Positions 4,691 through 41,771 of a DNA stretch of 64,000 nt are shown piece after piece (position 1 is the first letter of the stretch; each line of letters starts with the position of its first letter). The stretch lies in NCBI GenBank assembly GCA_946965045.2, contig OX337237.1, positions 310,001-374,000 on the forward strand, given 5' to 3'. The position numbers and the translations under genes were made by a program. The notes beneath the pieces are model-generated. The model did not search any database and was not told the DNA's origin. It worked only from the letters and a program-made list of their open reading frames with translations. The DNA comes from Epithemia pelagica (Eukaryota > Protista > Bacillariophyta).

Positions 4691-5728
4691 ATGTTTCTGG
4701 TTACATCGACCAACGAGCCCCGATTAAAACGTCGACCGTCCTTTTGGCCCTTTTCCACCAAGGAGACAATCCGAAAACCAGGCAACATGATATTGTCGGA
4801 AAGGAACATGTTATCACGTACAGAGGACCGCGATAAGTTTGTGGAACGGAAGACCACCTTATCTCGAACCTCTTCTTGTTGCTCGAATGGGACTTTTGTG
4901 ACCTCACCGTTACCATCTCGACTTGAAAGCAAGACATTGACGACTTGCCAAAATGAGGCACAGTCCGTATCACGTAGTGGTGATTTGCAATCTAGCACGA
5001 TCACCAATGCCGCCTGTGTCCATGGAAACAACAGCCAGAGCGACTATCAACACCAAAGTTACAGAACTACAAATCGAAGGCACGTACGTTTCCAAGAAGA
5101 CCACAACGTATATTATGATCCACCTGCCAATCACCCTGTGACGGATGGGGACCAGAATACTTGGGAGTTGTTATGGTACAGTCGCGACGAAACCAAACAT
5201 CTCAAGGAAGATGTGATGCAGTCCGTTGCCGTTCGCAGTGCCTTGTATCAAACCTGGCGAAACGAACCAGCCCCTTCCAATTGGAAGCAAAGCAAAAGCA
5301 AACGGCGTGGACGCGGCGTGGCAGGAGGACCAACCAATCAAGCACAAGATCCTTTCGAGCATGTCTACCGCCAGTGTTGCGTCGGAAACACACTAACGTC
5401 TCAGCAGGTCCATGCCTTGAGTAGATTTCTGGACGAGGACAGCACCGGCTTGGAATGCCTCGTCTTAAAACATTCCATTCCCAGCATTGCAAAGGATAAA
5501 GAGGTACGACGACACCTCCTACTAACGACACTCAATCGTAACCGAATAAGATTGGATCGCCTGTCCCACCACTCTCGGGAAAGACGTAACAGTTGGAAGG
5601 AACTCCAATCCTTGGAAATCTCACATCAAATGGCAGACATCACAGAGCCTGATCGATTGTTTGCTTTGGCGATGGGACAAGTATTAGAACGGCAAGTCCA
5701 ACGAGAAGAAGGAGAAATCAAGTGGTGA
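4691..5728 (+). CDS. Uncharacterised diatom-type protein with RVxF motif (RHVRF...WYS...GLE)
   Basis: 345-aa ATG-initiated ORF. RHVRFQEDHNVYY, LLWYSRDE, TGLECL and DRLFALAMG follow the same motif order as the paralogs at 34-41.8 kb. Confidence 0.75.
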   Translation: MFLVTSTNEPRLKRRPSFWPFSTKETIRKPGNMILSERNMLSRTEDRDKFVERKTTLSRTSSCCSNGTFVTSPLPSRLESKTLTTCQNEAQSVSRSGDLQSSTITNAACVHGNNSQSDYQHQSYRTTNRRHVRFQEDHNVYYDPPANHPVTDGDQNTWELLWYSRDETKHLKEDVMQSVAVRSALYQTWRNEPAPSNWKQSKSKRRGRGVAGGPTNQAQDPFEHVYRQCCVGNTLTSQQVHALSRFLDEDSTGLECLVLKHSIPSIAKDKEVRRHLLLTTLNRNRIRLDRLSHHSRERRNSWKELQSLEISHQMADITEPDRLFALAMGQVLERQVQREEGEIKW

Positions 5729-6050
5729 AGGTCGGACTCTGCGGCCTCTGTCGACGAATGAAATTTCGGAAGGATCTGGTGTGTCGGAATGTGGATATGC
5801 CCTACGATATGAGCTATGCCCTACCATATGAGGGGTCGCCTTTGATGCCACAGAACGCTTGGAACAGGATAGTCCTTTCGTCTACAATAGTTTACGCACT
5901 ATTTGGTTTCCAATACCTACCCCTGCTTTGAATATTGTCTGCCGAATCTAGTGAGATTGTGTTTTTGAGACAAATTGTGTTTTTGAGACAAACGTTGTTG
6001 CTTGTGGGGACTCTTGTGAAATATACGCAGAGCAGTCCTCTTACTACGTC

Positions 6051-6752
6051 TTATGATCGCTCCATGACTTGCATGCTTTCCACTTGGTTCTTGATGCGCC
6101 GAGCTACTTGTTGACCTTCATTCTTTTTGAGACGCAAGATTTTGGCTCCTTCGGCTTTGGTCGTAATCACGACATGTTCCTGAGTATCTCCACAACAGCA
6201 TGTTTGCGCAATGCAATTCGGTGGCACCCCCTTGACGTCGGCATCGGTAATCTGCGACAAATCAACCGAGTCGATTTCATACTTGGGTCCACAGCAACAC
6301 GAGCAACAAGCAATGGGCCCAAATCGACAGGGATTGACAGTTTTGATCTCCAAGTGATTTCGTCGCAAGGAATATGTACTGGGATCATTGGGGCAACAGC
6401 CGCATCCAGTGGCACACAAGCGATGGACCCAGGAAAAGTACAAGACCTCTCGACCCTCCCATAGGACTTGTTCTCGTTGTTTCATGGCTTTGGATTGACG
6501 AAGAGTCTGCAAGGTTTCGCGGATACGAATTCGATCGCCGATACTCGATACACCCATTTCCCGGAGGTTTTGGTCCGTCAAATTGGGTGCCACCTCGCCT
6601 GTGATATCATTGGCAATAAACACTTCGCCATAATTTCCCAAACCCTTGCTCTCTAAATACGATGCCAACGCAGTAGAACTCCAATTGGACCAATCACGAG
6701 TTGATTCGGTTGTTGTAATATCGTTGACACTGTTTTTCTTGGTGCGAGTCAT
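6051..6752 (-). CDS. SAM-domain protein with cysteine-rich C-terminal domain
   Basis: 233-aa ORF. WSSTALASYLESKGLGNYGEVFIANDITGEVAPNLTDQNLREMGVSSIGDRIRI fits the SAM consensus; Cys clusters GCGCCP, CCSCCCG and TCCCG follow. Confidence 0.8.
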   Translation of the reverse strand: MTRTKKNSVNDITTTESTRDWSNWSSTALASYLESKGLGNYGEVFIANDITGEVAPNLTDQNLREMGVSSIGDRIRIRETLQTLRQSKAMKQREQVLWEGREVLYFSWVHRLCATGCGCCPNDPSTYSLRRNHLEIKTVNPCRFGPIACCSCCCGPKYEIDSVDLSQITDADVKGVPPNCIAQTCCCGDTQEHVVITTKAEGAKILRLKKNEGQQVARRIKNQVESMQVMERS

Positions 6753-7434: not shown

Positions 7435-9192
7435 CTACCGTTGGAGATTGCAGTCTCGGCTCGCATTGACAAATTCATCGCACCGGACACCCTGTAATTT
7501 CAAGGACGATCTTCCTCCTTGTTGTTGATGCGTTTGCACGAGTTCCAGTCCTTGGACCAACCCATTCACAGTCCCAACCGGCGTTTCGACATAATCTTTG
7601 TAAATGCGATAACACGCTTGTCGCATGCGACAGCGTTGTTCCAGAGAAATGGTGTCCAAATAGGCCAAGGTCGTGCGGCCGGCATCCTTTTCCGGAAGAA
7701 TCACGGCACACTCGGTCCAATTGACCAATTCGGGACGAAAGGGCCAGACCCAATCATCGGCATGCACCACGGGTATAGTACCAGCCGACAAGACTTCGGA
7801 AAAGCGGTACGAAAATTTATTGTCGCCTCGAGCCGCCAAGGCAAAGACGGCACGGGCCATGAATTGGGGATAGGAGTACTGTGACAGGGCGGACCGATTG
7901 AATTCGGCGGCAAGAAAATAGCGCGAGACAAAGATTCGTTGATTGTCATTAAGGTGTTGATAGGATCTTCTCGCTCCACCCCCATGACGACGATGAAAGT
8001 CTGCATTGGCACCGGATCGAAAATTTCCAGCGTAGACAAAGTAAAAGGGCCGATTGGTTTCGGCGGCACAGGTTTGAATGTCATGGACTTGTTGCCGTGT
8101 CAAGTGCGAGGGACGTGGCATGGGTGGGATCAATCCTTGATCACGATCCTCCTTGACATGCGAAATGAGGGAGGAGAGCGTGGCAATGGAAAGGTACGAG
8201 GCATTGGAGAGAGAGCCAGTGGTACGAATCTGCGGATTGCGCCCTCCACCCAAACCGTCTCCAGTACAATCCAACAAAATGGCCGTCGTGGGAAAACTAG
8301 CGAGGCGAAGCTTTTCAAAGGTTGGACTGGACCAGAGAGGATTCATTGGTTGTTCCAAGGGTGTCGTTCCGGTATGTCGAGTTCGGCGGGTGCCTCCTCC
8401 CAACAGTCGTCGACCAAAGGTGACATCCATATTTTGCTCCCCTCCCCCACCGTATATGGGGTAATTGGATTCTCCGCATTGAGGTTGATCCAAAAATATA
8501 TAAATGCGTGTCTGGGGAGGGAGTCTGGTGGTACTGTTGTTGTTGATGGTGGTGGCCAGGAGGGTTCTGTTCGAGCCTGCAGGTTGTTGTTGTTGTTGTT
8601 CTTGTCGTCGTCGTTTTCGTCCTTGTTGTGGTCGTTTCGGATAGACTTGATCCAGTTCGTTCCACAGGGTTGGATGAAACCATGGGTGGTTAATGACACC
8701 GGTCAACAGTTCGGTTTCCCGAATACTGCGAGGAATGGTCAAGGCCCATTGTTGATTGACATGATTCCATCCAAAACTCGTGAGCAAAATTACGGCTGGA
8801 GGAGGTGGTGCATTCGGATCCAACCAGGGACGGTGCACCTTTGGATCCCACTCCAAGGTCTTGTCCTGAACCAAGGAATGGGGCCACCAAACTGTCTTGT
8901 TATTGTTGTTGTTGTTCTTGTGGTAGCTGGTGGTGGTGTCGGAATCGTTGGAACCTGATGTGACTGTCACATTCTCATGAGCACGATGGTCCACCACAAG
9001 AATCGTATTGTTGTTATTGTTGCTGCTGCTGAGGGACGAGGACGACACTGCGGGAAATACATATCGAGACAACTCGACTCCAATTTGAAATTGCCATACC
9101 ACCGTAACACTGGCCAGTGCCAACCCCACAGTAAGAATGGTTCTTCTTCGTGTTCTTCTTCGTTGGAAGCAACAACAACGTCGATTCGTCAT
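7435..9192 (-). CDS. Exostosin-family (GT47) glycosyltransferase, copy 1
   Basis: Type II membrane anchor (RRRTILTVGLALASVTVVWQF). C-terminal FALAARGDNKFSYRFSEVLSAGTIPVVHADDWVWPF is typical of exostosin/GT47. Likely ATG at 9192. Confidence 0.85.
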   Translation of the reverse strand: MTNRRCCCFQRRRTRRRTILTVGLALASVTVVWQFQIGVELSRYVFPAVSSSSLSSSNNNNNTILVVDHRAHENVTVTSGSNDSDTTTSYHKNNNNNNKTVWWPHSLVQDKTLEWDPKVHRPWLDPNAPPPPAVILLTSFGWNHVNQQWALTIPRSIRETELLTGVINHPWFHPTLWNELDQVYPKRPQQGRKRRRQEQQQQQPAGSNRTLLATTINNNSTTRLPPQTRIYIFLDQPQCGESNYPIYGGGGEQNMDVTFGRRLLGGGTRRTRHTGTTPLEQPMNPLWSSPTFEKLRLASFPTTAILLDCTGDGLGGGRNPQIRTTGSLSNASYLSIATLSSLISHVKEDRDQGLIPPMPRPSHLTRQQVHDIQTCAAETNRPFYFVYAGNFRSGANADFHRRHGGGARRSYQHLNDNQRIFVSRYFLAAEFNRSALSQYSYPQFMARAVFALAARGDNKFSYRFSEVLSAGTIPVVHADDWVWPFRPELVNWTECAVILPEKDAGRTTLAYLDTISLEQRCRMRQACYRIYKDYVETPVGTVNGLVQGLELVQTHQQQGGRSSLKLQGVRCDEFVNASRDCNLQR

Positions 9193-9811
9193 TCCATAAT
9201 TTTGTGCTCTCTCTCTACTCCAAATGTCGGCAAACAATACCCTCTATGCAACAAGCAAGACAACAAGCAACAACATGGAACTAAGAAAGCGTTCCCATTG
9301 TCACAGTCACAGCGCCCACAAAAAAGCTATGCCTATATCTATATCAAATAGCTATGATCCTCTATTTGAGGTACTTCTATCCTAATACGACGTCTTTTGC
9401 AAGTGTGTTCTCGTCTCTCTCTCTAGACCTTTGCGAAACTCTCGAATCGAAACCAAAAAGGAAAGGAACATGGTTGTCGGAATAACACCATCCACTATTA
9501 TAATAGAAAGTATAGTGTTCCAAGTTCAGCGTGCCCGTCGTGAACCGTGACTCGTCCCTACCAAAACACCCGGGAGAGAGTCCACAACGAACCTGCATGT
9601 CACAGTGGATTGGATGATGAAACGTTGGACGAGCCGCTGGCTTTCTTGGCACTGCGACTCCTGCTGCTAGTAGGTACAAATACTCGGAAAACACACATCT
9701 TTCCTAGATACCAAAGGAAACGAAACTAGGCAGGCTACTAGTGTAGTAGTGGTACAAAGGTTCCGTTCCCTCGTCTCGTCCTCCTTCTACCGAGTGGTTT
9801 CTCCTCTACAT

Positions 9812-11479
9812 CTACCGTTGGAGATTGCAGTCTCGGCTCGGATTGACAAATTCATCGCACCGGACCCCTTGCAATTTTAATGGCGATCCTCCTTCGTGTC
9901 GTTGCGTTTGCAAGAGTTCCAGTCCTTGGACCAACCCGTGAATGGTTCCGACCGTGGTTTCGACATAGTCTTTGTAAATGCGATAACACGCTTGTCGCAT
10001 GCGACAGCGTTGTTCCACAGAAATCGTGTCCAAATAGGCCACGGTCGTCTTGCCGGCATCTTGTTCGGGACGAATGACGGCACACGCGGTCCAATTCACC
10101 AATTCGGGACGAAACGGCCAGACCCACTCATCGGCATGCACGACGGGAATGGCACCGGCCGACAAGACTTCGGAAAAGCGATAGGAAAATTTATTGTCCC
10201 CTCGCGCCGCCAAGGCAAAGACGGACCGGGCCAGGAATTGGGCATACGAGTACTTGGACAAGGCGGACCGATGGAATTCACTTGCATTGGAATAAGGCGT
10301 GACAAAGATTCGTTGATTGTCGTTCAGGGGTTGATACGAGGACCGTGCGCCACCGCCGTGTTGACGTTCAAAGTCGACATTGTTGCCATTGCGAAAATTG
10401 CCAGCATAGACAAAGAAAAAAGGCCGATTGGTTTCGGCGGCACACGTGGCAATATCGTGCACTTGTTGGTCCGTCAACTGACAAGGGTGGGGCATGGGTG
10501 GAACCAATCCTTGATCCACCTCTTCCTGGACATCTCTAATGAGGGACGACAGTGTCGCAATGGAAAGATAAGAGGCATTGGAGAGAAAGCCACTCACACG
10601 TCGTTGTTGTGGTTCCGGAAAGGCCCCCAACCCGTACCCATTGCAATTGAACAACAGGGCCATTGTGGAAAAGGTTTGGCGCAGCCGTGAAAAGGTCCGA
10701 CTGGTCCAAAGCGGATTGTGAGACGGCACCAAGGGTGTCACGTAGGGCGTGCCTCCTCCCGACGGTCGACCCAACGTGACATCCATGTTGGCTGGTCGGC
10801 CTCCATTGTAAATCGGGTAATTGGATTCCCCGCACTGCGGACGATCCAAAAACACATAGAGGCGTGTCGTCGTGTTGGGGAGCGGGAATCGGGTGGTCCT
10901 ACGGTTGGTGATGGGGCCTGGTGGTCGTCGTCGTCGTTTCTGATAGAGTTGCTCTAGTTCCTCCCATAGCGTGGGATGGAACCAGGGATGGTTGATGATA
11001 CCGGTAAACAATTCCGTTTCCCGAATACTGCGAGGAATGGTCCGGGCCCAAGTTTGATTCCAGTGATTCCATCCAAAACTGGTCAGCACAATCACGGCGG
11101 GAGGAGGTGGTGCATTCGGATCCAACCAGGGACGGTACACCTTTGGATCCCACTCCAAGGTTTGGTCCTGAATCAAGGAATGGGGCCACCAGACTGTCTT
11201 GTTCTTGTTGTGGTTGTTGTTCTTGTGGTTGGCAGGATGCTGGAGTGGGACGGCGGCCAGGGTTGTGGGATTGTGGATGGGATCCAGCCCCGGACGGTCC
11301 AACTCCACCGCAAGAAGGTTGCTGGACAACAACGACGACGACGACGAGGAATCCACCACCGAGAGGGACAATTCCAGTCCCAGTTGGAACTGCCATACCA
11401 ACGCCATGCTGGTAACAAGGGCCACACACACCAAAGTGGTTCGGGTGGTGTGAGAAAACAGTCTTGTGGTCGTCGTCAT
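9812..11479 (-). CDS. Exostosin-family (GT47) glycosyltransferase, copy 2 (tandem duplicate)
   Basis: Same architecture and near-identical C-terminus (FALAARGDNKFSYRFSEVLSAGAIPVVHADEWVWPF...CRMRQACYRIY) as copy 1. Likely ATG at 11479. Confidence 0.85.
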   Translation of the reverse strand: MTTTTRLFSHTTRTTLVCVALVTSMALVWQFQLGLELSLSVVDSSSSSSLLSSNLLAVELDRPGLDPIHNPTTLAAVPLQHPANHKNNNHNKNKTVWWPHSLIQDQTLEWDPKVYRPWLDPNAPPPPAVIVLTSFGWNHWNQTWARTIPRSIRETELFTGIINHPWFHPTLWEELEQLYQKRRRRPPGPITNRRTTRFPLPNTTTRLYVFLDRPQCGESNYPIYNGGRPANMDVTLGRPSGGGTPYVTPLVPSHNPLWTSRTFSRLRQTFSTMALLFNCNGYGLGAFPEPQQRRVSGFLSNASYLSIATLSSLIRDVQEEVDQGLVPPMPHPCQLTDQQVHDIATCAAETNRPFFFVYAGNFRNGNNVDFERQHGGGARSSYQPLNDNQRIFVTPYSNASEFHRSALSKYSYAQFLARSVFALAARGDNKFSYRFSEVLSAGAIPVVHADEWVWPFRPELVNWTACAVIRPEQDAGKTTVAYLDTISVEQRCRMRQACYRIYKDYVETTVGTIHGLVQGLELLQTQRHEGGSPLKLQGVRCDEFVNPSRDCNLQR

Positions 11480-12356
11480 GGTTGGCTGTGGTTGGCGAGA
11501 TTCCAACCATCCACGAGAGGGGATGATGCCTGTTGTTGGCGTTGTCGTGGAGGAACACGCTCGTCGTGTGAGTGTTTCGTTGGCTGTACCACAGAGAGTA
11601 TACGGAGGATCTATAGTAACGGATCAACGCGTCCCCCCAGTGTGCAAATCTGACGCCGCCTTTGTTGCAGAAAAGGAGAGACCAAAACGCAAGGTCGCTC
11701 GGCGCCGTCGCCCGACCAGCGTTCTAAACCAGTCTGAAGTGAGCGATTTCTTAGAGAACCAACCAAGAGCAGTACTTAGCATCGAGTTCCGTTGACTCGT
11801 TCTATAGTTAAGGCGTTTGATCTTGCACAAGATCAAAACTGCTCGATCAACCGTTCACTAAGAAACTCTCTAATAAATAATAATGGTCGCGAGTCGGCAC
11901 GTCGGAACCACGTGTGTGGAAAAACAGGATAACCATCACCCGTCACCAGCACCAGAGGTGAAAAGGCGATGACCATGACGCCGTCCCACCCCCACACAGT
12001 TTGTGTTGACAACGGTGGAACTAATGTCTGTGGTATCATCATCATCAAGCCTGCGGCAGCTAAGGAACCAGCCCCCACCCAAAAGCCCAACGAACATGCT
12101 CCACAAGGACGACCACGAGACGAATACAACGTTGACCAGCAGGAGGATGACACCCGCCATGGCAGCAGCTTGGTACCTCGAGGCGTGATAGAAAGGCATG
12201 GTTGCCTCACGAACGAATGCATGGTATGCAAGTTGTACGTGGCAATCCACGCGGTTCGCAATCGCGTGTCTAGAAAGAGACGATCGGTACAGCTCTTTTG
12301 GTGGCTCACAAATTATGGCCACTCCCAAACTCGCTCCGGACATGTACAGCACATTT

Positions 12357-14629: not shown

Positions 14630-17600
14630 ATGATACCGCCTGCATCGACGGGCGATGAAGAGAAGAAACACGACTTCACTGTTTTTGCATCTTCTGGTGG
14701 TGAGGATGAGAAACCATGCGACGGTACGTAACGCTCATGGAAACTGGGCTCAGATGGCGCAACGTATCGTGATGCAGTTTTCAAAATGATCGTACAGACC
14801 CTCCTCATCACTTGTCCTTCTATCCTATACATATACAGATCTAGCCGAACAGTTGGTCTCCGAACTCGAGAGTACCTTGCAGGAACTGAAAATGCTACAA
14901 TGCTCCAGAGGTGACGGACAAGGAAATGATACGAGGAAGTTTATTCTGGAGTTTAAGAGTGGGATGGATCGGTTGGTCCATCGTCTTCGTGAGAATCCAG
15001 GCCAGGAAATGAACGCTATTTCGCATGAAGTGGAATACTTTTGTGATAAGGCCAAGTTGTTTTTCCGAAATAAACAAGAAATGAACAAAGATGAATATGA
15101 AGGCTCTAGAGATGGTACGTAAGTATGCGCAACGGGTCGATTGTACCCGTTCAACATCTACTTTCACAATCTTGTACTGACACGCTGTCCCCTTCGATTC
15201 CTATATAGTGTTGGACGAAGAGTTGGTTACGAAACTCACGTTCATCTTGGACGAGTTAAAGAGCCTCCAACTCTCTATCCAGGAGGAACCCACCTATCAC
15301 GCTTTAGGGGAAGGTCTTTTTGAAGATGTGGCCAACTTTGTCCATGAATTTTCAAGTGGCATGGATCGGTTGGTGCAACATCCGCATCAAAGTCAGGAAA
15401 TTGACGATCCGGCTGCTGTTGTAGAACACTATCATGAGGTTGCCAGGTTGTTTCTGGAACACAAACGAAAAAGAATGGGTGCTCTGGATCAATACGTGCG
15501 TCCACTCCTCAAAAACGGATTTCGGTTGATGAAAGGTGACGCTCAAGCTTGTGACGACAAGGAAAGTGAGCAGCGTTCTTCCTCCTTTTATGTGAACTTG
15601 TCCCTTATGTATGACGAAGATAACACTGGCAACGAGCTTACTTCCGTGCTTAAACATCTCCCACACAAGACGAAAAAGAAAAAGAAGAGGAAGACGGTGA
15701 ATGAATCGATTGGCCGTAACATTAAGAAACAATACAAGTGGTGGACTGATGCTGAAGTGACGCATACCTTGGAGGAAGCGTTGACTCGCAAGCTGTGCAA
15801 CGATGGAGCAGATCTGATTGATTTCGAGTACTGGATTGGTCTTCTCTCACCACGCAAACAGGTTGTAGTCACAGATGATGATGATGAAGATGATGAGGAG
15901 GAAGAGGATAACGAAGATGGAGATGACGACAGCACTAACATGGAATTGTTTGAAAAGGAACTTCTCTTGCTGCAGTCCAAGACAGGAGAATGGTCCAAGT
16001 GGGAACCGCCATTGCTTTTTGAAAATGTACGCACTGTCGCTACTCCTAGTACCATTGTAGTCGAATGGGATTCACCATCGTGCTCCATGGATGGTAGTGC
16101 TGATTCGATGGATCAACATATCACTTCGCTGTTTCTCGCGGACGATGGCATCGGCAATCCGATCTTTCTCGACAGAAGTCTCGGCAAAACTGCAGGTTAT
16201 GTATGGACAGGCCTAGAGCATAATACGGAATACATTGTCGAGGTTCATGCATCTTCCGATACCCATGGAGTGAGCACGGAAAGCTCCAAGCTGACAGTCC
16301 GTACCGAAAAGGTGGTGTCCCTGGCCCGAAGAATCCATGGCTGTGTCAAGGATGGTTCCTCTGGCATTGGTACGATGCCGGGAACGGAAACGCTCCATTT
16401 GATTTCGTCTTTTTCGAGTTCCATCAAGTCAAAGGGGATTCACCTTCCCGGGCAAGCAACAGTCGATTGCGTCCGTTTTGTCGACGTGATTCCAGGTTTT
16501 GAACCCCAATACGAGTTTGGCAATATGGAAGATGCCTTGGTGTGCATTTTGACGGGAGAGACCGGTGCGGGGAAATCAACGCATTTGAATGCCATTGTCA
16601 ACTGGCTCTTTGGTGTTGAGCTGGAAGATCCCTTTCGACTTTTGTTGATTGATGATTCACATATGAAGGCCACAAGTTCTGTGACACAGCATATTACTGT
16701 GTATCGCATCCGTCATTTACCTGGAATGCCAATCGACAAGAGCCTCATGCTGATTGACTCTCCAGGCTACGCGGACTCAAGAAACCTCAAGGCTGATGAC
16801 TTTACCACGCATGCCTTCCGTCAATTGTTCAAAGAGATTAGTCACGTCAATTGCGTTGGACTTGTCATGAAGGCGTATAATGAACGACTGACGGCGAGTA
16901 CGAAATATGTGATTGAGAAGATGTTACAGCTGTTTGATACGAGTATCAAAGACAACATTCTTCCCATTTGCACGTTTGCGGACCATGGCGTGCCAACATG
17001 TTTGGAAGGATTGAAGTCGGACAATGTTTCGTTTCAGCATCATGTCAAGGTCCAGAATTCCATGTTCTCTTGTCGATATGTTCGCAGTCAAGGAGAAGCA
17101 GGACCGATGTCCTCGGCCTTGATGCAAGAACGTAAACTCTATTGGCAAATTGCGTATAACGGGATTTCTTCCATGTTTGACATTGTGTCTGACCACATGG
17201 TTCTTCGGCCGCTGGATAAGAGCTCCCGCGTTTTGGACCAGCGCCAGAAGCTTCAAGAAACATTGCAAGCAGTGATCCATGCACTTTCAGAAACAACGGC
17301 CGATGTTGCAAATATACTGCAGCAGCTTAACTTTATGGTTAATGTTTTGGGAAATGTTCCCACCGAAAAGGTCAAGGTGAAGAAATCCGAGAGTGTCAAA
17401 ACTGATCTTCCGACGGGCGTCCATGTTACTTTGTGTTCCAAGTGCAATGTAACATGTCACATGGGATGCCGAATCCCAAATGATCAGGATAAGGCGAGAT
17501 GTTGTGCCATGGACAAGTCTGGGAACTGTCGTGTGTGTCCTGGCAAGTGTTATTGGACGCATCACCACAACGCTGAGTACTACTGGGAGGTGAAGACGAG

Positions 17601-18302
17601 AGTTGAAGAAGTGGTTCCAGAGGAACTTATCAAGAGGTGAGTCATAAGTGTATGTAGATTGGAAAAATGACCATTCCCTCCAATCTTCTTCTTCTGACCG
17701 TACTGCCTTACGCTTGATGATAATCGGAACGGCAAAGGTGGGCTGGAGAGAATGGTTCGCATGAAGCTGCAATCTTGAATGGATTGAAACAGTGGGAGGA
17801 AAAACAGCAACATGTGCTGAATCTTTTGAATCTTTGTGTTTCACTACAAGAAGAGCTTCAAGTCAAGAGCCTTCGGAACAACCCACGTGTAGCTTTGGCC
17901 TATGTCGAGTCGTTGATTGAAATGCAAAAAGACCGGGGAGCAACAGATGATGTGTTACAAGCATTGCATCAAGCCAAGAAACAGCTTCGCCTCCAGGATG
18001 AAAGTAAGCGTCAACGTGATATAAACGCAGCAAACAAGAACGCTTTTGAATGCATTAAAGATGAACTGGACCGTCGATCTAAGTTGCCTCCTCGCCAGAG
18101 GTTGATGGAAGAAAACCAGCCGAGTGACTTCTACAATGAAGTTCTGAATTATGTTCCACGAGAATACCGTCGCGATCTTCCTCCTCCGTTGAAGATTTCC
18201 AATCATTGGATTTGTGGAGCGCAGAGTTACCCCCCGTTTCGTGAAAGTCTGAAAAAGACTGGGCTGGCCTTGAAGACACTTTTAAGCATGGGAGTGTCGT
18301 AG
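14630..18302 (+). CDS. FN3 + P-loop GTPase + Cys/His-rich domain + coiled-coil protein, paralog B; join(14630..14723,14839..15114,15209..17636,17738..18302)
   Basis: Three GT-AG introns (14724-14838, 15115-15208, 17637-17737) each restore the frame. GETGAGKS, DSPG, TFADHG and CSKCNVTCHMGC...CCAMD...CRVCPGKCYWTHHHN are present. Start codon uncertain. Confidence 0.85.
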
Positions 18303-19528: not shown

Positions 19529-22500
19529 ATGTTGCGTCGCGTCTTAAAACAACACCGTGAGAAACGTCGCCAACGCCGCATGGCGGCCCAACCCCATCCA
19601 ACTGCTGGTAACGTTCCAGCAGATCCTGTATCGAGCAAGGAAAAAGATCCCCTGGATGTGACTCTCAATCCTTCTTCGTCCTCTGATGACGGTGAAATGG
19701 AAGGCCCTCCAGCCGGTACGTAGACACAAACAGAGACACCTTTTGTGAGACGTTCTTCATCATCTTGTACTGACACTTGCAATCACTCTCTTTTTTCTGT
19801 ATCAATTCCTTTTCACAGTAGTATTGGACCAAGAGTTGGTTGCCAAGCTTGAGTTTGTCTGGAACGAGCTCAAGATCCTGCAACGTTCCATCCAAGACGA
19901 ACCCACGTATCGCGCTCTCGGACCAGGCCTCGGTGTCGATGTGGCCAACTTTGTTCTGGAATTTTCCCATGGCATGGACCGATTGATGCAACAACCACCT
20001 CAACAACAACCGGGAATGGACGACCCGACGGTGGTTGTGGAACACTATTGCGATATTGCCAAGTTGTTTCTCAAAAACAAACGCAAAGAAATGAATGCTC
20101 TCGATCAATTCGTGGGTCCACTCCTGGACCATGGATTTCAATTGGTGGACGAAGAAGGCAATCGTCAAGACCAGGAACAGTGCTCTTCCTCCTTTCATGT
20201 GAACTTGTCCCTGTTGTACGATTCAGATAATTTCGGCAACGATCTGGCTTCTCAACTGAACCATCTGCCTACTCAAACGGCCGGACGCAAGAACAAGAAG
20301 CAGTACAAGTGGTGGACCGATGCAGAAGTGACGCATACCTTGGAGGAAGCATTGACTCGCAAGCTGTGCAACGATGAAGCCAATCGGATTGAGTTCCAGT
20401 ACTGGATTGGTCTTCCATCAACGGCGGGGCGACTAGGATGCACGGATGATAACGACGACGACAATGATAACGACGGTGGCGACAAGATCGACACCAACAC
20501 GGACTTGTTTGACGAGGAACTTCTCTTGTTGCGCACCAAGACGGGAAAATGGTCCAGGTGGGAACCGCCGTTGCCTTTTGAAAATGTACGCACTGTCGCA
20601 ACCCCTAGTACTATTGTAGTTGAGTGGGATTCGCCGCCATGCTCCGTGGATGGAAATGTTGGTTCGATGGACCAACATATCATTTCGCTGTTTCTCGCAG
20701 ACGATGGCAGTGGCGATCCAATTTTTCTCGAGAGAAGTGTCGGCAAAACTGCAGGTTGTGTATGGACAGGCCTAGAGCATAATACGGAGTACGTTGTCGA
20801 GGTTCATGCATCTTCCGATACCCATGGAGTGAGCACGGAAAGCTCCAAGCTGACAGTCCGTACCGAAAAGGTGGTGTCCCTGGCCCGAAGAATCCATGGC
20901 TGTGTCAAGGATGGTGCCTCTGGAATTGGTACAATGCCGGGAACGGAAACGCTCCATTTGTTTTCTTCCTTTTCGAGTTCCATCAAGTCAAAGGGGATTC
21001 ACCTTCCGGGACAACCAACGGTCGATTGCGTCCGTTTTGTCGACGTGATTCCCGGTTTTGAACCCCAATACGAGTTTGGCAATATGGAAGATGCCTTGGT
21101 GTGCATTTTGACGGGAGAGACCGGTGCGGGGAAATCAACGCATTTGAATGCCATTGTCAACTGGCTCTTTGGTGTTGAGCTGGAAGATCCATTTCGCCTA
21201 TTGTTGATTGATGATTCACATATGAAGGCCACGAGTTCTGTGACACAGCATATCACCGTGTATCGCATCCGTCATTTACCTGGAATGCCCATCGACAAGA
21301 GCCTCATGCTGATTGACTCTCCAGGCTACGCGGACTCGAGAAACCTCAAGGCTGATGACTTTACCACGCATGCCTTCCGTCAATTGTTCAAAGAGATTAG
21401 TCACGTCAATTGCGTTGGACTTGTCATGAAGGCGTATAATGAACGCCTGACGGCGAGTACGAAATATGTGATTGAGAAGATGTTGCAGTTATTTGATACG
21501 AGTATCAAAGACAACATTCTTCCCATTTGCACCTTTGCGGACCATGGCGTGCCAACATGCTTGGAGGGATTGAAGTCGGACAATGTTTCTTTCCAACATC
21601 ATGTCAAGGTCCAGAATTCAATGTTCTCTTGTCGATATGTTCGCAGTCAAGGAGAAACAGGGCCAATGTCCTCGGCGTTGATGCAAGAGCGCAAGCTATA
21701 CTGGCAAATTGCGTATAACGGAATCTCTTCCATGTTTGACATTGTGTCTAACCACATGGTTCTTCGTCCATTGGATGCCAGTAGCCTCATTTTGGAAAAA
21801 CGGCAGTTGCTTCAAGAAACATTGCAAGCTGTGATACATGCGCTTTCAGAAACAACAGCCGATGTGGCCAACATTATGCAACAGTTGAACTTTTTGGTCA
21901 ATATTCTGGGAGAAGTTCCAACTGACAAGGTTACTGTGACAAAGTCTGAAAGTGTCAAAACTGATCTTCCGACGGGCGTCCATGTTACTTTGTGTTCCAA
22001 GTGCAATGTAACATGTCACATGGGATGCCGAATCCCAAATGATCAGGATAAAGCGAGATGTTGTGCCATGGACAAGTCTGGGAACTGTACTGTGTGTCCT
22101 GGCAAATGTCATTGGACACATCACCACAATGCTACTTACTACTGGGAGGTGAAAACGAGAGTCGAAGAAGTGGTTCCGGAAGAACTGATCAAAAGGTGAG
22201 TCACATGTGTATCGGATCGGAGACGATCTCTCTTGTTCTTCTTACCATAATTCTTTATCTACAAAGGTGGGCTGGAGAGAATGGTTCGCATGAAGCAGCG
22301 ATCTTAAATGGATTGAAACAGTTGGAGGAGAAACAGCAACATGTGGTCGATCTTTTAAATCAATGCGTCTCACTGCAAAAAGAGCTCCAAGTCAAGAGTC
22401 TTCGGAACAATCCTCGTGTAGCGTTGGCCTATGTTGAATCTTTGATTGAAATGCAAAAAGACCGTGGAGCCACAGATGATGTGCTGCAGGCTTTGCATCA

Positions 22501-32710: not shown

Positions 32711-34015
32711 ATAACAACCACAGTCGAGGCAGCCCACAATAAGGATTACAAAACTTGGGCAAGCTTGCCAAAACACCAAACCATTCAAAACGAACTGGTC
32801 ATGTTCTTGCTTTTCTGGACGATGGAGGAGGATGGGTCATATTCTTCTCTGGGGGAAACTACGAGTCACGTTCTTCTTCTTCGCTGTCTTGGACGAGAAT
32901 GGATGTTGTCACGAATCGATAGTATCAATATGCATTAATCTGCATTAATCAATTATTTTTAGTTTATCATCTTGAACTAACACAACAACCCGGAACGTAT
33001 GTTGTCAGTTCCAATGTGGATTCCACCCAGGTAAGAAGATGGTCGACCGAAAGTTCGCTCGTCGCTGTCTTCTGTTTGTCCGTAATCGATCGTGTTCCGT
33101 TCCTCTAAAACATGATGGAACTGACAACATAGAATGAAATAAGGAGATGATGATACAACGGTTGGCAAAAGATGTCCCGGAGTGTTGAAAAACACAAAAC
33201 ACCGTTTTCCCGCCCTAAATCGGTTCTTGTGAGAACACGTCCGCATAGCTTGGGTAGTTTTGTTTGTGCCGTTGATCGCTTTGCGATCCATCCCAGAAAC
33301 TTGTAGACTATTATTATTTATTGGTCAACCATCTTCTTGACTTCCTTCGCCCGATAATTCCAGTAATTCCGAATCATATTGGTCGTTTGCAATGAGATCA
33401 GTGCTTGCCAAAAACATTATGGAGTCGTACGACCTTGAATGGAACGGAATGGAGACAATTGCTCGCACCAACCAGCAACTACTTGTTGATTCACTACCAA
33501 CCACGTTGCATGGATGATGTTGGTGCGTTGGGGAAGATGTGTACAGGATCCGCGAGCGGGAGCGGTACCCCCAGTGACCTAGCAAGCGCTAGGTTGTGTT
33601 GGGGATTCGCTCTCTCTGACGGCATGAACAATGACGAGTGGACTTACTCCCCAAGAGACTTCTCGGGCCTTGATTCTGATTCATGAGTTCTTCATCGAAC
33701 CGAAAGACACTGGTTGGGACTTTCACTGCCAGCTGCCACATGCGGTATTGAAGGCGGGCACCAAAGAGCCACACTAACGGCACCCGTACGTGTACGTGTA
33801 CTCGTACTCGTACAATGGAGAGAGGCGCAACGGTCTAAGAAGACTTTGAAGCACGAGTTCGAAAGATAATCGTGGGCAGACACACACACACACACACACA
33901 CACAAGTCCCGACCACAGACACATACACACTTGTCTAGAGCTCTCACAAAATTCAAGTCCCCCCCCCCCCCCCCCCAAACCACACCACCCTTGTCCTCAG
34001 CACCACCACCACATC

Positions 34016-34876
34016 ATGTTGCATCAACCCCTCACCATGACTCCTGACGATTCGGATCACTCGACCGGTTCGACCATGACCACCGCCGTGGCATGTCCAT
34101 GCAACGATAGCCAAAAGTCACTGCTGCTGGTGGCAACCAAAACAAGCAGCAAGAAGGAAACCAAGAACAAGAGGAGCAAATCCAAGAAATCACGCCAGGA
34201 TAAGGACAAGAAGAAACAAGACAAGGACAAACAGCACAAGAAGAAATCCGTCCCAACGAAGAAGCGTGTCCGCTTTAACGAACGACACAACCAATGCTAC
34301 GAGAATCCCACTCGACATGCCGAAGACTGTCACGAAACGTGGTACAATGAAGACGACTATGACGATATGCGAGCCCATACCCGATACGTGTTGACCAATC
34401 TCCAACAAGAACAACAAGACAACAAGGACGAGGACGGCGCCACTCGAGCTGGAATTCTGGTATCACTCGTGCACTTGGTGACTTCCATTCATCATGTGGT
34501 GCACGATGCCACACGCATTCTTCCACCAGTTTTGGCCAAGCAATTGCAAACCTTGTATGGCAATCACGACGATGATTCTGCTTTGGAGTTGATTGGACTG
34601 GAGCTTCATATGGACAAACGCATCAAGGAGGAAGCACGGGCTCGACGAGAATCCATTCAAGATGTTGTGTACGATATTCAAAATGAACACGATCATGGTC
34701 TCTTGGCGGACGATGAAACATGTACGGAATTGCGGGAATGTTGTCTCAATTATTCCCAAGCCTTTTGCCTATTGGCCCAACTGCAAGCCTTGGCACAACT
34801 AGGGGTGTCGACAGAACCATGGAAAACAGTTCCGCATTGCGCAAACACTGGGAATCCTTGTACAAAACCAATATGA
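34016..34876 (+). CDS. RVxF-motif family protein, tandem copy A
   Basis: ATG at 34016. DHSTGSTMTT, KKRVRFNERHNQ, HAEDCHETWY...YDDMR, LELIGLEL, ELRECCLNYSQA...AQLQALAQL. Confidence 0.85.
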   Translation: MLHQPLTMTPDDSDHSTGSTMTTAVACPCNDSQKSLLLVATKTSSKKETKNKRSKSKKSRQDKDKKKQDKDKQHKKKSVPTKKRVRFNERHNQCYENPTRHAEDCHETWYNEDDYDDMRAHTRYVLTNLQQEQQDNKDEDGATRAGILVSLVHLVTSIHHVVHDATRILPPVLAKQLQTLYGNHDDDSALELIGLELHMDKRIKEEARARRESIQDVVYDIQNEHDHGLLADDETCTELRECCLNYSQAFCLLAQLQALAQLGVSTEPWKTVPHCANTGNPCTKPI

Positions 34877-37009
34877 ATAGATTGCAATCATTACAATGTA
34901 GACAAACAAAACGTAACATGCTTCTCCTATGCCAATGAGAGTCGCGGAGTACTCCTAGGAGTATTTATCTAGGAGAAAGCTAGGACATCGGTAAAGTAGG
35001 TAGCTTTCCCTGGTACTGGGGGAGGGTCCGGTCGCGGTTGTTGGATCGAAATTTTCCGCAAAAGTCGGAGAAAACATGAATCCTTTCTCTCAAAATGCCA
35101 CAGGGTCCGGATTGCAGACACAGAACCTTGAATGTCGTTTTTCGTATTAGCCACATTCATTCCGATGGTTGGTTGATTTGACTATCCCGATGGAAGGGCG
35201 ATGGTATTGCTTTGGACGAGCTATTGCTATTATTTCTTTCCAAGACGATGATCTATTCCTCAAGCATGGAAGTGGCGATACATGGTCCATTATGAGAAAC
35301 ATTGGGTTGGCATAGCATAACAACTCGTTGAGGCGCCCCTTTGGTGCCGTGATTGGTGGCAATGCCAGAGCTGATGAGAATGCCACTGTCGTGACGACCA
35401 CCACCAGTAGTCGACGCGGAGTCAAGTCGAACTTTTGGCTCAGCGCAACACCGACATGCTCATTTATTCCGTCGCACATTCCCTATTCCGTCCCTGTGGA
35501 CCCACCGTTGCTTTTTGATCGATAATCCAACAGTGTCGATTGTTTCGCGTCGTTTTGCTCGCCGCATTTGATTTCCCAGTACAACTATGGACAGTTCCCG
35601 CGGTCGCGTCGCTTCTTGCTGGTATAATGATGCCTTGGCATTGGATGATTATTATTGGCAAGTGACTATCAATGGAGGGTTTGATGGTTCATGCGACAGT
35701 GTCACAAGGAGGAATAAACAGCAATCACATCAATCATACTAGTAGCTCTTCTAGGACCACGACGACATTTGCCTCACGATGTTCTCATTTCCGATATGGA
35801 GGAGAATGTAGATAGAAGTAGTCGTTCGTGGCGTGATCCGACCACAATCCGAATTGCTTCTCAACGCACCAGGATGAAGCTTGCTGGAACCTTGGAACCG
35901 CTTTTGGCGCACGACTACGCGTAATCAGAAAGGACCCAAACAGTGACTTGTGGTGATATAAATACTCCTAGAAAGCACGGACCGTCCACAGGTTTCTTAT
36001 GTTTATACCGGATTGGCAGTGGTACCTAGTACGTAGTTGTTCTATCTTCTTAACGCCGTTAAGATATTATGCGATACAAAGTGCCTCTCCACGCAACAAG
36101 ATCATGCAGCAGCAGGTGCGGATGTGTAAACCGGTATTGGTCCAAGATTGGCAGCAGTGGATGCCAACGAGTGAACCAGTTACTACTACGGCAGTTACTG
36201 AAAGCACGTTCGACGTGTTCTTTCTTCTTTCTCACAATTTTGCTCTCTTAGGCAGTGGCATGATCGCAGCGGCTGGCTACCGAGCTCTGGCACGCTCATA
36301 TTCTCAGAGATAGCTCCAAGGCTAAAAGTCATTCCTTATAAACAATACATCTAGGGCTCACTTGACGATTAGGTCTCTAAGAAGCTACAACCTAGTACAT
36401 CATTTTGGACTTGGTCCGCGATCCAGTACAGTTCGTTTTGGTTTCAGCAATTTGCCCGAGATGGATTGATTCTTGATTCTTCGTTTCTCTCACGAACTAC
36501 CATAATATTCTTCTTGTCTCCAGACTTCCTTGGTTCGATTTAGGTTCGACAATCAACTATGAGTGATGCGTGTTGCTAAATAATGGTTCATATTTCAATT
36601 ATTGACGATTGATAATGTAAAACGTACAATGGTGTATGCCCAAATCCCCACAACCCGTAATCAATAATCAATAACCGAAAATAGATTACCCAGCCCAAAA
36701 GAGCATGGACATCCCCCTATCCGATAATTGGCCATAGTCGAGGATGAGTAGCCTTATGTTTGTTTTACTCCTATGTTGGGTAGCCAATAGCTATACTCCT
36801 CCTAGGAGTACCAGTTACTGGTTAGAGCTATATATTATTGGGTTTTCCTGATGAAGGACGAAAACAACAAACAACCCACGGGATTGTAAACAAAAAATAA
36901 TACTCTGTTGTGGTGAAACACAAAAGTTTTCTTGCGACGTATCACGTGCATGCTCATAATTTTTTTTCCTTTTGCGACGACTTCTGTTTTTGAATCAAAC
37001 CACCACACC

Positions 37010-37690
37010 ATGTATATCCAAACAAGTGACGCTTCTCTTCACTCGACAGGTTCTACCATGACAACATCTCTTGTCGGGGCAGAATGTAAGTCGTCATCAC
37101 ACGACTGTACCATTCAAAAACGTGTCCGATTTGACGAACGATACAATCAAATCTTTGTCAACCATGGTCGATATGCCGAAGATTGTCACGAAACTTGGTA
37201 CGATGAGGACGACTATGATGACATGCGAGCATATAACAGATTCGTTATGGCTCACTTTCAACGACAAGAACCAAATGAACGACCACAAGAAGAAGATGCC
37301 AAGAACATGCTTCCAAACCAAGCAACAATTCTGCGTTCACTCTTTTATGTGGTCACATCGATTCGATATGAGGTGGGCGATGTCACCTCCATTCTCTCAC
37401 CTGCCTTGTCCAATCAATTGACTGCCTTGTATACCGGCAGTAGCAATGCGGCTATGGAATTGATTGGATTGGAACTCCATGTTGACAAGAGATTGAAACA
37501 AGAGGCACAGGCTCGAAGAGAAGCCATTCAAGAAGTTGTCTACGATGTCCAAAAGGAATACGACCGTGGTCTCTGGACGGATGAGGAACTTCAACGTGAA
37601 TTGCGAGACTGTTGTCTCAATCATTCTCAAGCATTTGGCCTGTTTGCACAACTTCAAGCCTTGGCTCAACTTGGAGCGATAGACTTCTGA
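37010..37690 (+). CDS. RVxF-motif family protein, tandem copy B
   Basis: ATG at 37010. LHSTGSTMTT, QKRVRFDERYNQ, YAEDCHETWY, MELIGLELHVDKR, ELRDCCLNHSQA. Confidence 0.85.
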   Translation: MYIQTSDASLHSTGSTMTTSLVGAECKSSSHDCTIQKRVRFDERYNQIFVNHGRYAEDCHETWYDEDDYDDMRAYNRFVMAHFQRQEPNERPQEEDAKNMLPNQATILRSLFYVVTSIRYEVGDVTSILSPALSNQLTALYTGSSNAAMELIGLELHVDKRLKQEAQARREAIQEVVYDVQKEYDRGLWTDEELQRELRDCCLNHSQAFGLFAQLQALAQLGAIDF

Positions 37691-38886
37691 ATCCACGAAA
37701 CCATCCTTTTGTAAGGTGCTGGATCCTTGTAACATCAGTAGTAACTCTAGAGTGCGATATATACTTTGTGTAACAGACAGGACTATGGCGGTCCGTCATA
37801 TTAAGACAACTCTGCCTACCAAGCAGAAGTACCAAACAATCGCTGGTAACTGCTGCTCTATGTGAGCATCCGTCAAAGATGAATGCTGCGGTTTTTGACG
37901 ATCGAGGAGAACTGGTCTCACCGCCTTATTCTTTTTCGGAGAATGATGGTACCAGGACTCAGGTATCGAGTGATGTTAGACCACAGAACCCATGACGTTT
38001 TACGAACACCGATATGGAGTACGAGCAGTACCTAGCTAGAGTTGGTCTATCATATTATCATTATCCCAGTTGCCTTCTATCAACCCGCTAAAACCATGGC
38101 AATGATGCCGTCGTAATGAGGAAACCAGTTTTGGTGCGCAAGACTACTATAATAGGACACCCACAAAACGTGATACCATATCATGAGAGATCCTGAGATG
38201 GAAACAACTCAACAAGTGACTGATGGCGGTGTCCCATAACGAAAGTGTGAACATGATTCCCAAAGAGTCGCTCGTTCCCATTATGGATTGTAAAAGTAGT
38301 ACTACCCTGTTATGATGATAGTGATACTAGGTGGTCTATCAGCCCACCACAAGATCACGCAGTGCGGCTGCCTGGTTAACGAAAAACCGGTATCGGCTCA
38401 AGACTAGATAAAACACACAACGGCAGATCTTGAACCGTGAGAGAGCACGGTGTGCCACAAGGACTTTAGGTGTGCCACACCGAACGCAAGGTCGACGTGT
38501 TTCTTTCTGCACACGATAGCGTGCAATGGCTGCCTTCCTATAGTACGACTCTTAACAATAATACACCGAGGGGTTCTCCCTACGAATCGGCCGCTAAACC
38601 GGTTTCGAGAACTGGATGGTTGCTGGTTCACAAGAAAAAACATTCGGATATTGTGTGGTCTAGATTCACATACAATTTTTATCCGAACCATCCCAACAAA
38701 CATATAAATAACGGAGCCCGGATTATCTCCTGTGTTGCGTGGTAGGGAGATGTCCGACCGAGCAAAAAAGCATAGGTATTATGACTTATGACATGTTATC
38801 TGCTAGTATGGTTGGGGCTGCAGGCTGAAAGCATGATGCATGATGGATGATGGCTTCTCTCTTCTCTTGGTTGCACGTGGCACTGG

Positions 38887-38917
38887 CACGTAACACGTAA
38901 CACGTAACACGTAACAC
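38887..38917. repeat. (CACGTAA)4 heptamer array upstream of RVxF copy C
   Basis: Four exact copies at 38887-38914 plus a partial fifth. Confidence 0.9.
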
Positions 38918-39269
38918 TACTATACCTAGCTAGTAGGCACTACGCCAACTTCGTGAACACTGAAATCGGTATTGTGTATTGTGAATAATTAGGGGGGAGT
39001 AATTGTAGTAGTTAGTAGTTGGCTGGTGCTGGCACACGAATCCTACGAATACAGTAGTGGGTTAGAGTCAGAAGAAGTAAGTAAGCGATATATGGAAAAA
39101 TAATATTGCAACGTCGAGATTTTAAACGGGATTGTTGTTGTCATGGCAAATGCCGAACCAACTCTAGTCGTAAAACGTTGTCTCCTTCTCGTTGTTTCTC
39201 GTGTCTCTTTTTCTGGGGTCCTACTCTTCTCATAAATTTCAGTGTGCAATTTGTCCAACAACAGCCATC

Positions 39270-39932
39270 ATGTACGACCTCCAAACAATTGACGATTCGG
39301 TTCACTCGACCGGTTCCACCATTCGGACAACCGCAGCCTCATCTAAGTCTTTTGGTTCGTCGTCCACAAGAACCATTCCAAACAAGAAGCGGGTGCGTTT
39401 TGACGAACGATACAATCAAAGCTTTGCCAACCATGACAGATATGCCGAAGACTGTCATGAAACGTGGTACGATCAGGACGACTACGACGACATGCGAGCC
39501 TATAATCGAATGTTGGTGGCTCGATTGCAACGACAAGAAGAACCACAAGACAAGAATGACGCTATCGAAATTTTACGTTCAACCTTGCATTTGGTCAAAT
39601 CGATTCGACATGTAGTGGACGATGCCACCACCATTCTTACACCTGTCGTGTCCAAACAATTGGCAACCTTGTATACCGGTAGCGATGCGGCTTTGGAGTT
39701 GATTGGATTGGAACTCCATGTGGACAAGCGATTGAAACAAGAGGCACGAATCCGGAGAGAAGCCATTCAAGATGTGGTCTACGATATCCAAACGGAACAC
39801 GACCGTGGTCTCTTTTTGAACAATGAAGAATTGCAATGTGAATTGCGAGACTGTTGTCTCAATTATTCTCAAGCCCTTGGTCTGTTTGCACAATTGCAAG
39901 CGCTGGCACAACTTGCGGCGGGAGACTGCTGA
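39270..39932 (+). CDS. RVxF-motif family protein, tandem copy C
   Basis: ATG at 39270. VHSTGSTIRT, KKRVRFDERYNQ, YAEDCHETWY, LELIGLELHVDKR, ELRDCCLNYSQA. Confidence 0.85.
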   Translation: MYDLQTIDDSVHSTGSTIRTTAASSKSFGSSSTRTIPNKKRVRFDERYNQSFANHDRYAEDCHETWYDQDDYDDMRAYNRMLVARLQRQEEPQDKNDAIEILRSTLHLVKSIRHVVDDATTILTPVVSKQLATLYTGSDAALELIGLELHVDKRLKQEARIRREAIQDVVYDIQTEHDRGLFLNNEELQCELRDCCLNYSQALGLFAQLQALAQLAAGDC

Positions 39933-40928
39933 GTCCAAGAAATTGTGTGTTGGTGTGGACTCTTCTTGAGAAGAAACAAAAGAAGTGTTGTTTCCTCATT
40001 GTAAAACTTGTGTAATACTACCAATCCAATACTAGAGAATGTGATTTATGGACAAGTACATTTTGCAGGGAGTCACTCCTATATTGGGGCGACGGAAACC
40101 AGAAAAGCGCCCGCTATGGACGAGAATCGATTCCACATCTTGACATTGCAAAAGCAGAAACACGACCATGGTTACTGGACAGATCATCTGCATGGAATTG
40201 CGATAGTGTTTTCTTAACTACTAGGCTTGGTGGTGTGGGCACAATTTGCAGGAACCAATGGAATGGAACCATGTACAAAACTTGTCGACAAACTATAGGC
40301 GACAATGATTGGAATACAGCATGTACTGCGACAATCGATCGATCTTCGTTCCTCCGTATCATGGTGTGTAGGATGGGTAGCTACCCATCCGATTGATCTG
40401 AGATTTATGTGGGAGGAATTTGGGGGATGCAGTCGCGGTTTTGATGGATCGAAATTTCCCCGTCTCAACTCTCAACGCATCTCATTGTGTCCCATGAGAG
40501 CGAATCGATGGTTCGTGTCAAGGACTGCACTGTAACTATATGTATCCATTGAATCGGTTGAAGAAACATGTTGATGTACTACGACGCTGGATGATGAGGT
40601 GGTGTGGAAGCGCAAGTGGTCGGTGGTGGTGGTGGCTCTCCAATACTTCTTCATATTTTTGAGTGTGGTGAATGGTTGCAGTTGTGTGTGGTGGACAACG
40701 ATTCTCGGCTTGTTTTTTTTTTTGGTTGTACATTGAATCCGGTTTGGTTTCGTCGCCCTTGTAACGTATACCATGGTCCTGCAACTCTCCGCTGCCAAGG
40801 GGGATATCCTGCGAATAACGTTGGAACACCAGGTGTCGTCGTCGTCTCTACTGGTGTCCACCACCGAATTGTCTTGTACTGATCCGTGTCCTAGAAGTAC
40901 TGGTTCTCCTTGCCCTGCTGCAACAACC

Positions 40929-41771
40929 ATGCCCCATTCGTTAGCCACCCCACCACCATTTCCCACATCAACAAGTCCTTGTGTCCCACGAGGACGACGA
41001 CGGGTTTCCTTTGAGGAAGGGAACAATCAAAGTTATCCACCACCATTCCATGGTCAAGACGACGACACTAGGATCCACAACACGTGGTACACCCTAGAAG
41101 AGTATCAACAAATGCGATGCGACATGAAACGAACCATTCAGCAATTGCAACGCACGACCCGTACCATGACATCACCCAAGCAACAACCACAACCCTCCTC
41201 CTACCACCACAAGCACGAAGAAGAAAAACAAGCCGAACACGATCGTCGTCGTCATCAGTGCTTGTAAGTATCCTTGCCCGAAATTTTGGCATTCATTTTT
41301 GACATGATTGTCATGTCGACCGACTATGGTACTACATTCGACCACGAGGAGGAAGAATACGAAGATGAAGACGAACAAGACCAAGAGGATCTATCTTCCT
41401 GTTTGTTATCCCATGAGATCGACAAAGTCTTTCGTCTCTTGTACAACAACAGCAACAACACATCTCCAGATAATAATGACGATGACGATGACGATGACAC
41501 TTTATTCTTGTACGAATTGATTGGTCTGGAACGTCAAGTTCAACCAGGATTGCGACATGAAGTCAAGGATCGACGAGACCACCTGCACCATGTCGTGTGG
41601 GAGATTCAACACGATTGCCATACCGGATACTTGTCGCCTGACAAAGGTTCGTCGGAATTGCAACGTTCCTGTCGTCTCTGGTCGCGGGCCTTGACACTGT
41701 TTGCCACCAGTCAAGCCAAGGCCGTGGCGGCGGCGAGTACTACGACGCCTACAACTACAACAATGAGATAG
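40929..41771 (+). pseudogene. RVxF-motif family protein, divergent copy D with in-frame TAA at 41265-41267
   Basis: RRRVSFEEGNNQ and TWYTLEEYQQMR lie upstream; YELIGLERQV and ELQRSCRLWSRALTLFA lie downstream in the same frame, separated by one stop. Confidence 0.7.

Follow-up and report, generated by a model that had tools for sequence, protein, structure and literature searches.

The 64,000-nucleotide stretch of the diatom Epithemia pelagica analysed here (contig OX337237.1, positions 310,001 to 374,000; hereafter the window) codes for five members of a family of small proteins and for a catalytic subunit of protein phosphatase 1 (PP1). The five genes all lie on the forward strand, copy A on its own and copies B, C, D and E in a tandem array at 34016-41771 (Table 1). 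Each of the five open reading frames (ORFs) contains a basic-V-x-F motif of the RVxF type, the main docking motif for PP1, at the site given for it in a first-pass annotation, which had proposed the family as PP1-targeting subunits; downstream of the motif each has LWY or TWY, then GLE and, at the C-terminus, a helix. With a profile constructed from the copies in the window and their first homologs, the scores are 234-255 bits for B, C and D, 53 and 80 bits for the two halves of E and 43 bits for A. No further ORF obtains a score when the window is translated in all six frames, and the paralogs number exactly five. The divergent copy A is matched by the iterated profile over positions 14-208 with an E-value of 8e-13.

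At the protein level B, C and D are 60-68% identical to one another, E is 33-34% identical to these three, and A is 25-34% identical to the rest. The repetition between B, C and D at the DNA level is limited to their coding parts (63-88% identity), and their dN/dS values are 0.29-0.39; they are therefore best seen as old duplicates under purifying selection. The start of copy B, formerly placed at a GTG at 33872, is instead the ATG at 34016 according to the gene call. Just upstream of its KKRVRF motif copy B alone has an insert of about 45 residues rich in lysine (window 34130-34260), which looks like a nuclear localisation signal. A CA/TG microsatellite occupies 33880-33930, immediately upstream of copy B, and is the source of the HTHTHT and CVCVCV runs seen in ORF translations.

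Copy E, previously taken for a single open frame, is split by an in-frame TAA that falls within the variable linker of the family. Both halves share one frame, and with an X placed at the stop they give a single collinear profile match over positions 29-215 at 122.7 bits. An enumeration of introns found no canonical in-frame intron that removes the TAA while sparing the residues homologous to the rest of the family. Only one pair has a strong donor (GTAAGT at 41264, joined to the AG at 41452), and its use would cut out such residues; the other in-frame pairs have weak donors. We read copy E as a candidate nonsense pseudogene, probably of recent origin.

Table 1. Coordinates of the family genes, the PP1 gene and other features in the window
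Feature	Position	Strand	Description
Copy A	4691-5728	+	Divergent paralog, 345-aa ORF; family domain at residues ~101-329
Copy A N-terminal module	5075-5206	+	RRHVRF at 5075-5092, YY 6 residues past F, LWY, helix start (pattern scan, translation)
Copy B	34016-34876	+	286 aa (gene call, ORF); profile 234-318 bits
Copy B module	34259-34372	+	KKRVRF (34259-34276) ... TWY ... DYDDMR (pattern scan)
Copy C	37010-37690	+	226 aa; P0002
Copy C module	37115-37228	+	QKRVRF (37115-37132) ... TWY ... DYDDMR (pattern scan)
Copy D	39270-39932	+	220 aa; P0001; reference for structure models
Copy D module	39384-39497	+	KKRVRF (39384-39401; V42, F44), SF 51-52, R57, W66-Y67, helix from residue 69
Copy E, first half	40773-41264	+	164 aa: N-terminus, RRRVSF at 40995-41012, TWY helix; profile E 2e-16
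Copy E, stop	41265-41267	+	In-frame TAA inside GTAAGT, in the variable linker
Copy E, second half	41268-41771	+	C-terminal helical domain: IGLE, RR, VxEIQ, terminal helix; profile E 2e-24
PP1 catalytic subunit gene	55622-56723	+	Exon 1 55622-55698, intron 55699-55804, exon 2 55805-56723
GT47 exostosin-like glycosyltransferase pair	7435-9237, 9812-11506	-	Tandem
Pair with weak AIG1-like GTPase match	15208-17640, 19824-22199	+	Tandem
1085-aa ORF	42195-45452	-	Ser/Thr/Pro-rich; at least 5 T-V-P-V-G-P-K-F-[LM]-L-[DE]-[AS]-K-Y-G motifs near C-terminus; no Pfam match
1628-aa ORF	59084-63970	-	RVT_2 reverse-transcriptase domain (Ty1/copia-type element)

Architecture of the family proteins

The members share a four-part organization, which begins with an acidic N-terminal motif rich in Ser and Thr, continues through a variable linker (in copy B the site of the lysine-rich insert) and a module of about 55 residues, and ends in an all-helical C-terminal domain. 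The first of these takes the form [SD]-x2-S-x2-S-T-[FIVL]-[TS]-V (residues 8-20 of D, window 39270-39330; also in B, C and the homologs), with S in 88/100 and 78/96 and T in 75/102 of the sequences at the respective columns. Column statistics here and below come from 164 aligned stretches, and fits to motif patterns from 139 representatives clustered at 50% identity. The S/D-x2-S-x2-S spacing resembles that of hierarchical CK1-type phosphorylation sites.

The module has the consensus [RK][RK]-x-V-x-F-[DN]-E-x2-N-x-[YS]-[YFH] ... (R) ... E-D-C-x2-T-W-Y-x3-D-Y-x2-F-[RK]. Its V (130/140), F (127/142) and W (144/146) are among the best-conserved columns of the whole family; the position at -2 is basic in 114/139, and the Y of the WY pair is present in 132/146. 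Conservation further takes in the [DN]-E right after the F, a near-invariant N at F+5 (131/144), an E (116/143), the aromatic pair at F+7/F+8, the E-D-C and the D-Y-x2-F-[RK] of the helix. The C-terminal domain is marked by I-G-L-E, R-R, V-x-D-I-Q-x-E, E-L-R-x-S-C and a terminal S-Q-x3-L-F-A-Q-x-L-A-x-A-Q. The module and this one particular helical domain are always found together in the 150 proteins examined.

An AlphaFold2 model of copy D computed with 127 homologs has a mean predicted local distance difference test score (pLDDT) of 85.9 and a predicted TM-score of 0.73, with helices spanning residues 69-219. Fold searches with the whole model recover only generic helices (Foldseek against the Protein Data Bank, PDB, best E 0.6; VIA-wide best Z 5.8; Atlas TM <=0.36), and those with the model of the module yield no Foldseek rows and a best Z of 3.1. 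Syn-F4, a four-helix protein designed de novo, came up in a PDB profile search (E 1e-6) and was set aside as an artefact of helical composition. As modelled, the all-helical C-terminal domain is of no known fold.

None of 127 members reaches the gathering score of any Pfam family. The only recurrent match, on the ED-C..WY..DY..F[RK] part of the module, is to DUF7564 (PF24445), and we do not count the family as a member of it because the best score is 21.2 bits (best E 2e-4) against a gathering cut-off of 32.2 bits and only 4/134 module pieces match at E<=10. A literature search on DUF7564, PF10488, RVxF motifs in diatoms and diatom PP1 regulators found nothing relevant.

Match of the module to extended PP1-binding strings

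We compared the aligned motif position with three patterns of differing strictness, the general [RK]-x(0,1)-[VI]-{P}-[FW], that of Hendrickx and the stringent one of Meiselbach. The general pattern is fitted by 112 of the 139 representatives (81%), the Hendrickx pattern by 90 and the stringent one by 84 (60%), the last including all five window copies. The residues at the -1 and x positions fall almost without exception inside the sets allowed by the stringent pattern. The window ORFs contain the general pattern once in ~610 residues, against once in ~3,650 for the stringent one; a single RVxF match is thus unremarkable at the former rate, and the signal lies in the positional conservation over 139 representatives.

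The agreement extends beyond the five-residue motif. Six residues after the F, inside the 5-8 expected of a PhiPhi element, comes the pair [YS][YFH], the second position of which is aromatic or aliphatic in 137/139 representatives, and a W stands at F+22 in 136/139, with a helix beginning 3 residues past it in both AlphaFold2 models (of the whole protein and of the module alone). The resulting order is that of the RVxF-PhiPhi-R-W string through which Phactr1, PNUTS, spinophilin and PPP1R15 wrap around PP1; Phactr1 has LIRF at 519-522, PhiPhi at 527-530, R536 and W542, after which a helix runs from 545 to 565, and an F522A substitution costs ~650-fold in affinity (PMC7599070). The same succession of elements followed by a helix, which is amphipathic in those systems, is seen in Phactr1, spinophilin, neurabin and PNUTS. 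The distance from F522 to W542 in Phactr1 is 20 residues, as against 22 from F44 to W66 in copy D. The module matches an extended PP1-binding string better than chance or the bare five-residue motif would, and the proposal of PP1-targeting subunits is partly supported.

A second likeness is to the PP1-binding region represented by PF10488 (PP1c_bdg), which is found in GADD34 (PPP1R15A), CReP (PPP1R15B), ICP34.5 of herpes simplex virus and DP71L of African swine fever virus. Both have basic-V-x-F, an aromatic pair about 6 residues on, a Trp about 20 residues after the F and a helix with a conserved F and R, and the spacings in PPP1R15 differ from those of the diatom proteins by 1-3 residues. 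They differ in that the C-terminal domain is unrelated and the known PF10488 proteins come from animals and viruses. In a comparison of language-model features in the ESM Atlas, the nearest neighbors of the whole of copy D are unnamed diatom clusters (0.96), and the nearest named one is PF10488 (0.86); with residues 34-95 alone an unnamed giant-virus cluster comes first (0.91), followed by PF10488 clusters (0.88 and 0.89). We regard this signal as modest support since it probably rests on the same motif pattern. Two further points fit a docking role: the window's PP1 retains its docking-groove residues, and the dN/dS values show selection on B, C and D.

These lines of evidence raise the possibility, which we place somewhat short of an even chance, that the N-terminal module is a PP1-docking string. 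It would in that case be an RVxF-PhiPhi-(R)-W-helix string of the PPP1R15/Phactr type that docks the catalytic subunit of PP1: the V and F would occupy the RVxF pocket, a PP1 beta-strand would be extended by the aromatic pair, and the W would be placed close to the hydrophobic groove together with the helix after it. Targeting or the choice of substrate would then fall to the C-terminal helical domain, and the family would constitute a lineage-specific expansion of PP1 regulatory subunits, the presence of a PP1 gene in the same window being a coincidence.

A structural element or a docking string

Several observations weigh against PP1 docking. The Arg element (profile position 56) is R or K in only 67/139 representatives (48%), in which the family departs from Phactr1, spinophilin and PNUTS, and no sequence homology to these proteins was found. 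The general RVxF pattern is failed by 27/139 representatives, and 15/142 members have I (12), V (2) or L (1) in place of the F; such swaps are tolerated in a protein core and poor for the PP1 pocket. A hidden Markov model (HMM) of PF10488 gives no match at E-values up to 10 in either the 127 full-length members or the 134 module pieces, and a profile search of solved structures retrieves no PP1 regulator. By the tool's own rating, an ESM Atlas score that stays under 0.9 and rests on fewer than 170 features in common, as those for PF10488 do, counts as a lead only. The earlier comparison with GADD34 and ICP34.5 is matched at the level of language-model features, in which PF10488 is the nearest named family, and finds no confirmation at that of HMM similarity.

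The predicted structures point in the same direction. Disorder in the free state is the norm for validated RVxF strings, and the string of the PF10488 proteins shares it, whereas the corresponding segment of the diatom family is modelled by AlphaFold2 as ordered. In the full-length model of copy D, residues 41-70 are mostly non-helical and have block-mean pLDDT values of 88-90. When the module is modelled alone (residues 37-91 of D, with 134 aligned pieces), the mean pLDDT is 92.1 and no residue falls below 70, the first ten residues, RVRF included, averaging 88. The confidence is independent of the C-terminal domain because the module folded alone retains it, and with the string at 86-91 in both the whole protein and the isolated 55-residue module, the expectation of a disordered string is not borne out. 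These models suggest that the string and the WY helix form a self-contained ordered unit in which the V and F pack within the module. The first-pass annotation had held that a motif buried in a folded core or lacking conservation would speak against docking; the predicted order of the module goes part of the way toward the former.

The foremost alternative is accordingly that the basic-V-x-F, the aromatic pair, the WY and the Y/F face of the helix make up the small hydrophobic core of a self-contained N-terminal mini-domain, or a latch onto the helical domain, and do not dock to PP1. The match to RVxF would then be a coincidence arising from an extended segment of alternating polar and hydrophobic residues, and the family would act through its helical domain, for instance as a nuclear or scaffold protein. 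The high model confidence for the string in context and alone, the absence of an HMM link to any PP1-binding domain and the commonness of the general RVxF pattern all suit this account. So do the replacements of F by I, V or L and of V by I or L, as conservative swaps typical of buried positions, and the spread of conservation over the whole 40 residues, including the N, E and E-D-C positions, beyond the anchors of a short linear motif. Set against it is the make-up of the segment, highly polar and charged and with few hydrophobic anchors, as befits a binding string and not a core. The variable positions keep to the stringent RVxF sets, PhiPhi, W and helix match known PP1 strings in both order and spacing, and two separate language-model searches lead to PF10488. 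Moreover, segments that fold only conditionally are known to receive high confidence from AlphaFold2. On balance we consider a purely structural role only slightly less probable than PP1 docking.

A docking string for some partner other than PP1, such as another phosphatase of the PPP family or a diatom-specific protein, with a convergent resemblance to RVxF, appears unlikely to us. The string-like arrangement of conserved anchor residues and the invariable company of the same helical domain would be compatible with it, and the weak, below-threshold DUF7564 match to the WY helix hints at a wider class of such helices. Yet none of our results indicates a candidate partner, and the module agrees with the PP1-specific consensus more closely than a generic hydrophobic string would need to.

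Distribution of the family and its linkage to PP1

An exhaustive profile search recovers 463 cluster representatives of the family at E<=1e-3 and 180 at E<=1e-10 (50% clustering), most of which are 200-250 aa long. The sampled named members are all annotated as "hypothetical protein" and come from diatoms only, Epithemia clementina and Entomoneis species. MMETSP transcripts are among the named members, and relatives of the family are therefore expressed. Apparently, then, this is a large, unnamed, diatom-restricted family of small (~200-230 aa) and apparently soluble proteins, in keeping with its initial description from the sequence as an uncharacterised diatom family.

The family is present on at least six different Epithemia contigs. 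In a contig of Epithemia clementina (JBGMNV010000273.1, 165-192 kb) 100% identical family genes recur in tandem with a period of 6,135 bp (loci L001 and L002), which suggests very recent amplification or gene conversion. A scan of viral contigs with alignment A2 detected no relatives, and a metagenome scan gave one 1-kb contig without context. With just the module (region 36-80) as query, a word-index search retrieved only the window's own two proteins, and a search with the 134-piece module alignment returned no match. One 943-aa protein from a 3.1-kb Logan contig (P0100) contains the module twice, at residues 377-429 and 607-658, and is either a genuine tandem fusion or the product of an incorrectly joined array. 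A family locus on another diatom contig (L007) is flanked by RVT_2 and DDE_Tnp_1_7 elements.

The PP1 gene of the window, as recognized in the first-pass annotation, encodes a typical catalytic subunit. Its coding sequence, join(55622..55698, 55805..56723), is interrupted by a GT-AG intron of 106 nt (splice sites placed by eye), with an alternative ATG at 55607. The exon-2 ORF (55860-56720) matches human PP1-gamma with an E-value of 7e-154 and the Metallophos domain with 1.5e-46. The alignment shows conservation of the RVxF-groove residues and of the I133/Y134 site, as is to be expected of any PP1.

It is very improbable that the family and PP1 are functionally linked as neighbors in a co-regulated gene cluster: the PP1 gene does begin 13.85 kb past the end of copy E on the same strand, but unrelated genes and the 1085-aa ORF lie between them, and 50 kb separate copy A from PP1. 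None of five other family loci on contigs of Epithemia clementina and another diatom (L001, L002, L005, L006 and L007) has a PP1 gene within 10 kb, a range that a spacing of 14 kb would exceed. Given these five loci and the dispersal of the family over many contigs, the linkage is probably coincidental. The first-pass annotation had allowed for as much, and the synteny comparison is suggestive in the same sense.

Implications of a possible PP1-docking role

The specificity of PP1 comes from its regulatory subunits, and to our knowledge almost none of these are known outside animals, fungi and plants. Should the family dock PP1, diatom biology would gain a large lineage-specific set of phosphatase-targeting subunits, the PPP1R15-type string would extend beyond animals and their viruses, and mutants in the V and F would offer a simple experimental handle. 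If it does not, the family would be a cautionary case in which a consensus-grade RVxF accompanied by PhiPhi and W can be a structural element, which bears on the motif-based prediction of PP1 interactomes. The proposal of an expanded set of PP1 regulators, as first made for these genes, retains a real and conserved family and the RVxF-PhiPhi-(R)-W order in its favor; the order predicted by AlphaFold2 and the missing HMM link count against it.

ICP34.5 and DP71L are viral mimics of the host PP1-binding system in animals. By analogy, the diatom module might be a counterpart of the PPP1R15/ICP34.5/DP71L domain, through homology or tight convergence, that has expanded into hundreds of small regulatory subunits, in each of which a novel helical domain would confer specificity on the bound PP1; the small look-alike proteins in marine giant-virus clusters would be viral mimics of this host system. 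We judge this more far-reaching scenario to be improbable.

Other genes in the window

The window is rich in local duplications, with the tandem GT47 pair and the AIG1-like pair occurring besides the family described here. It also encodes an RCC1 protein.

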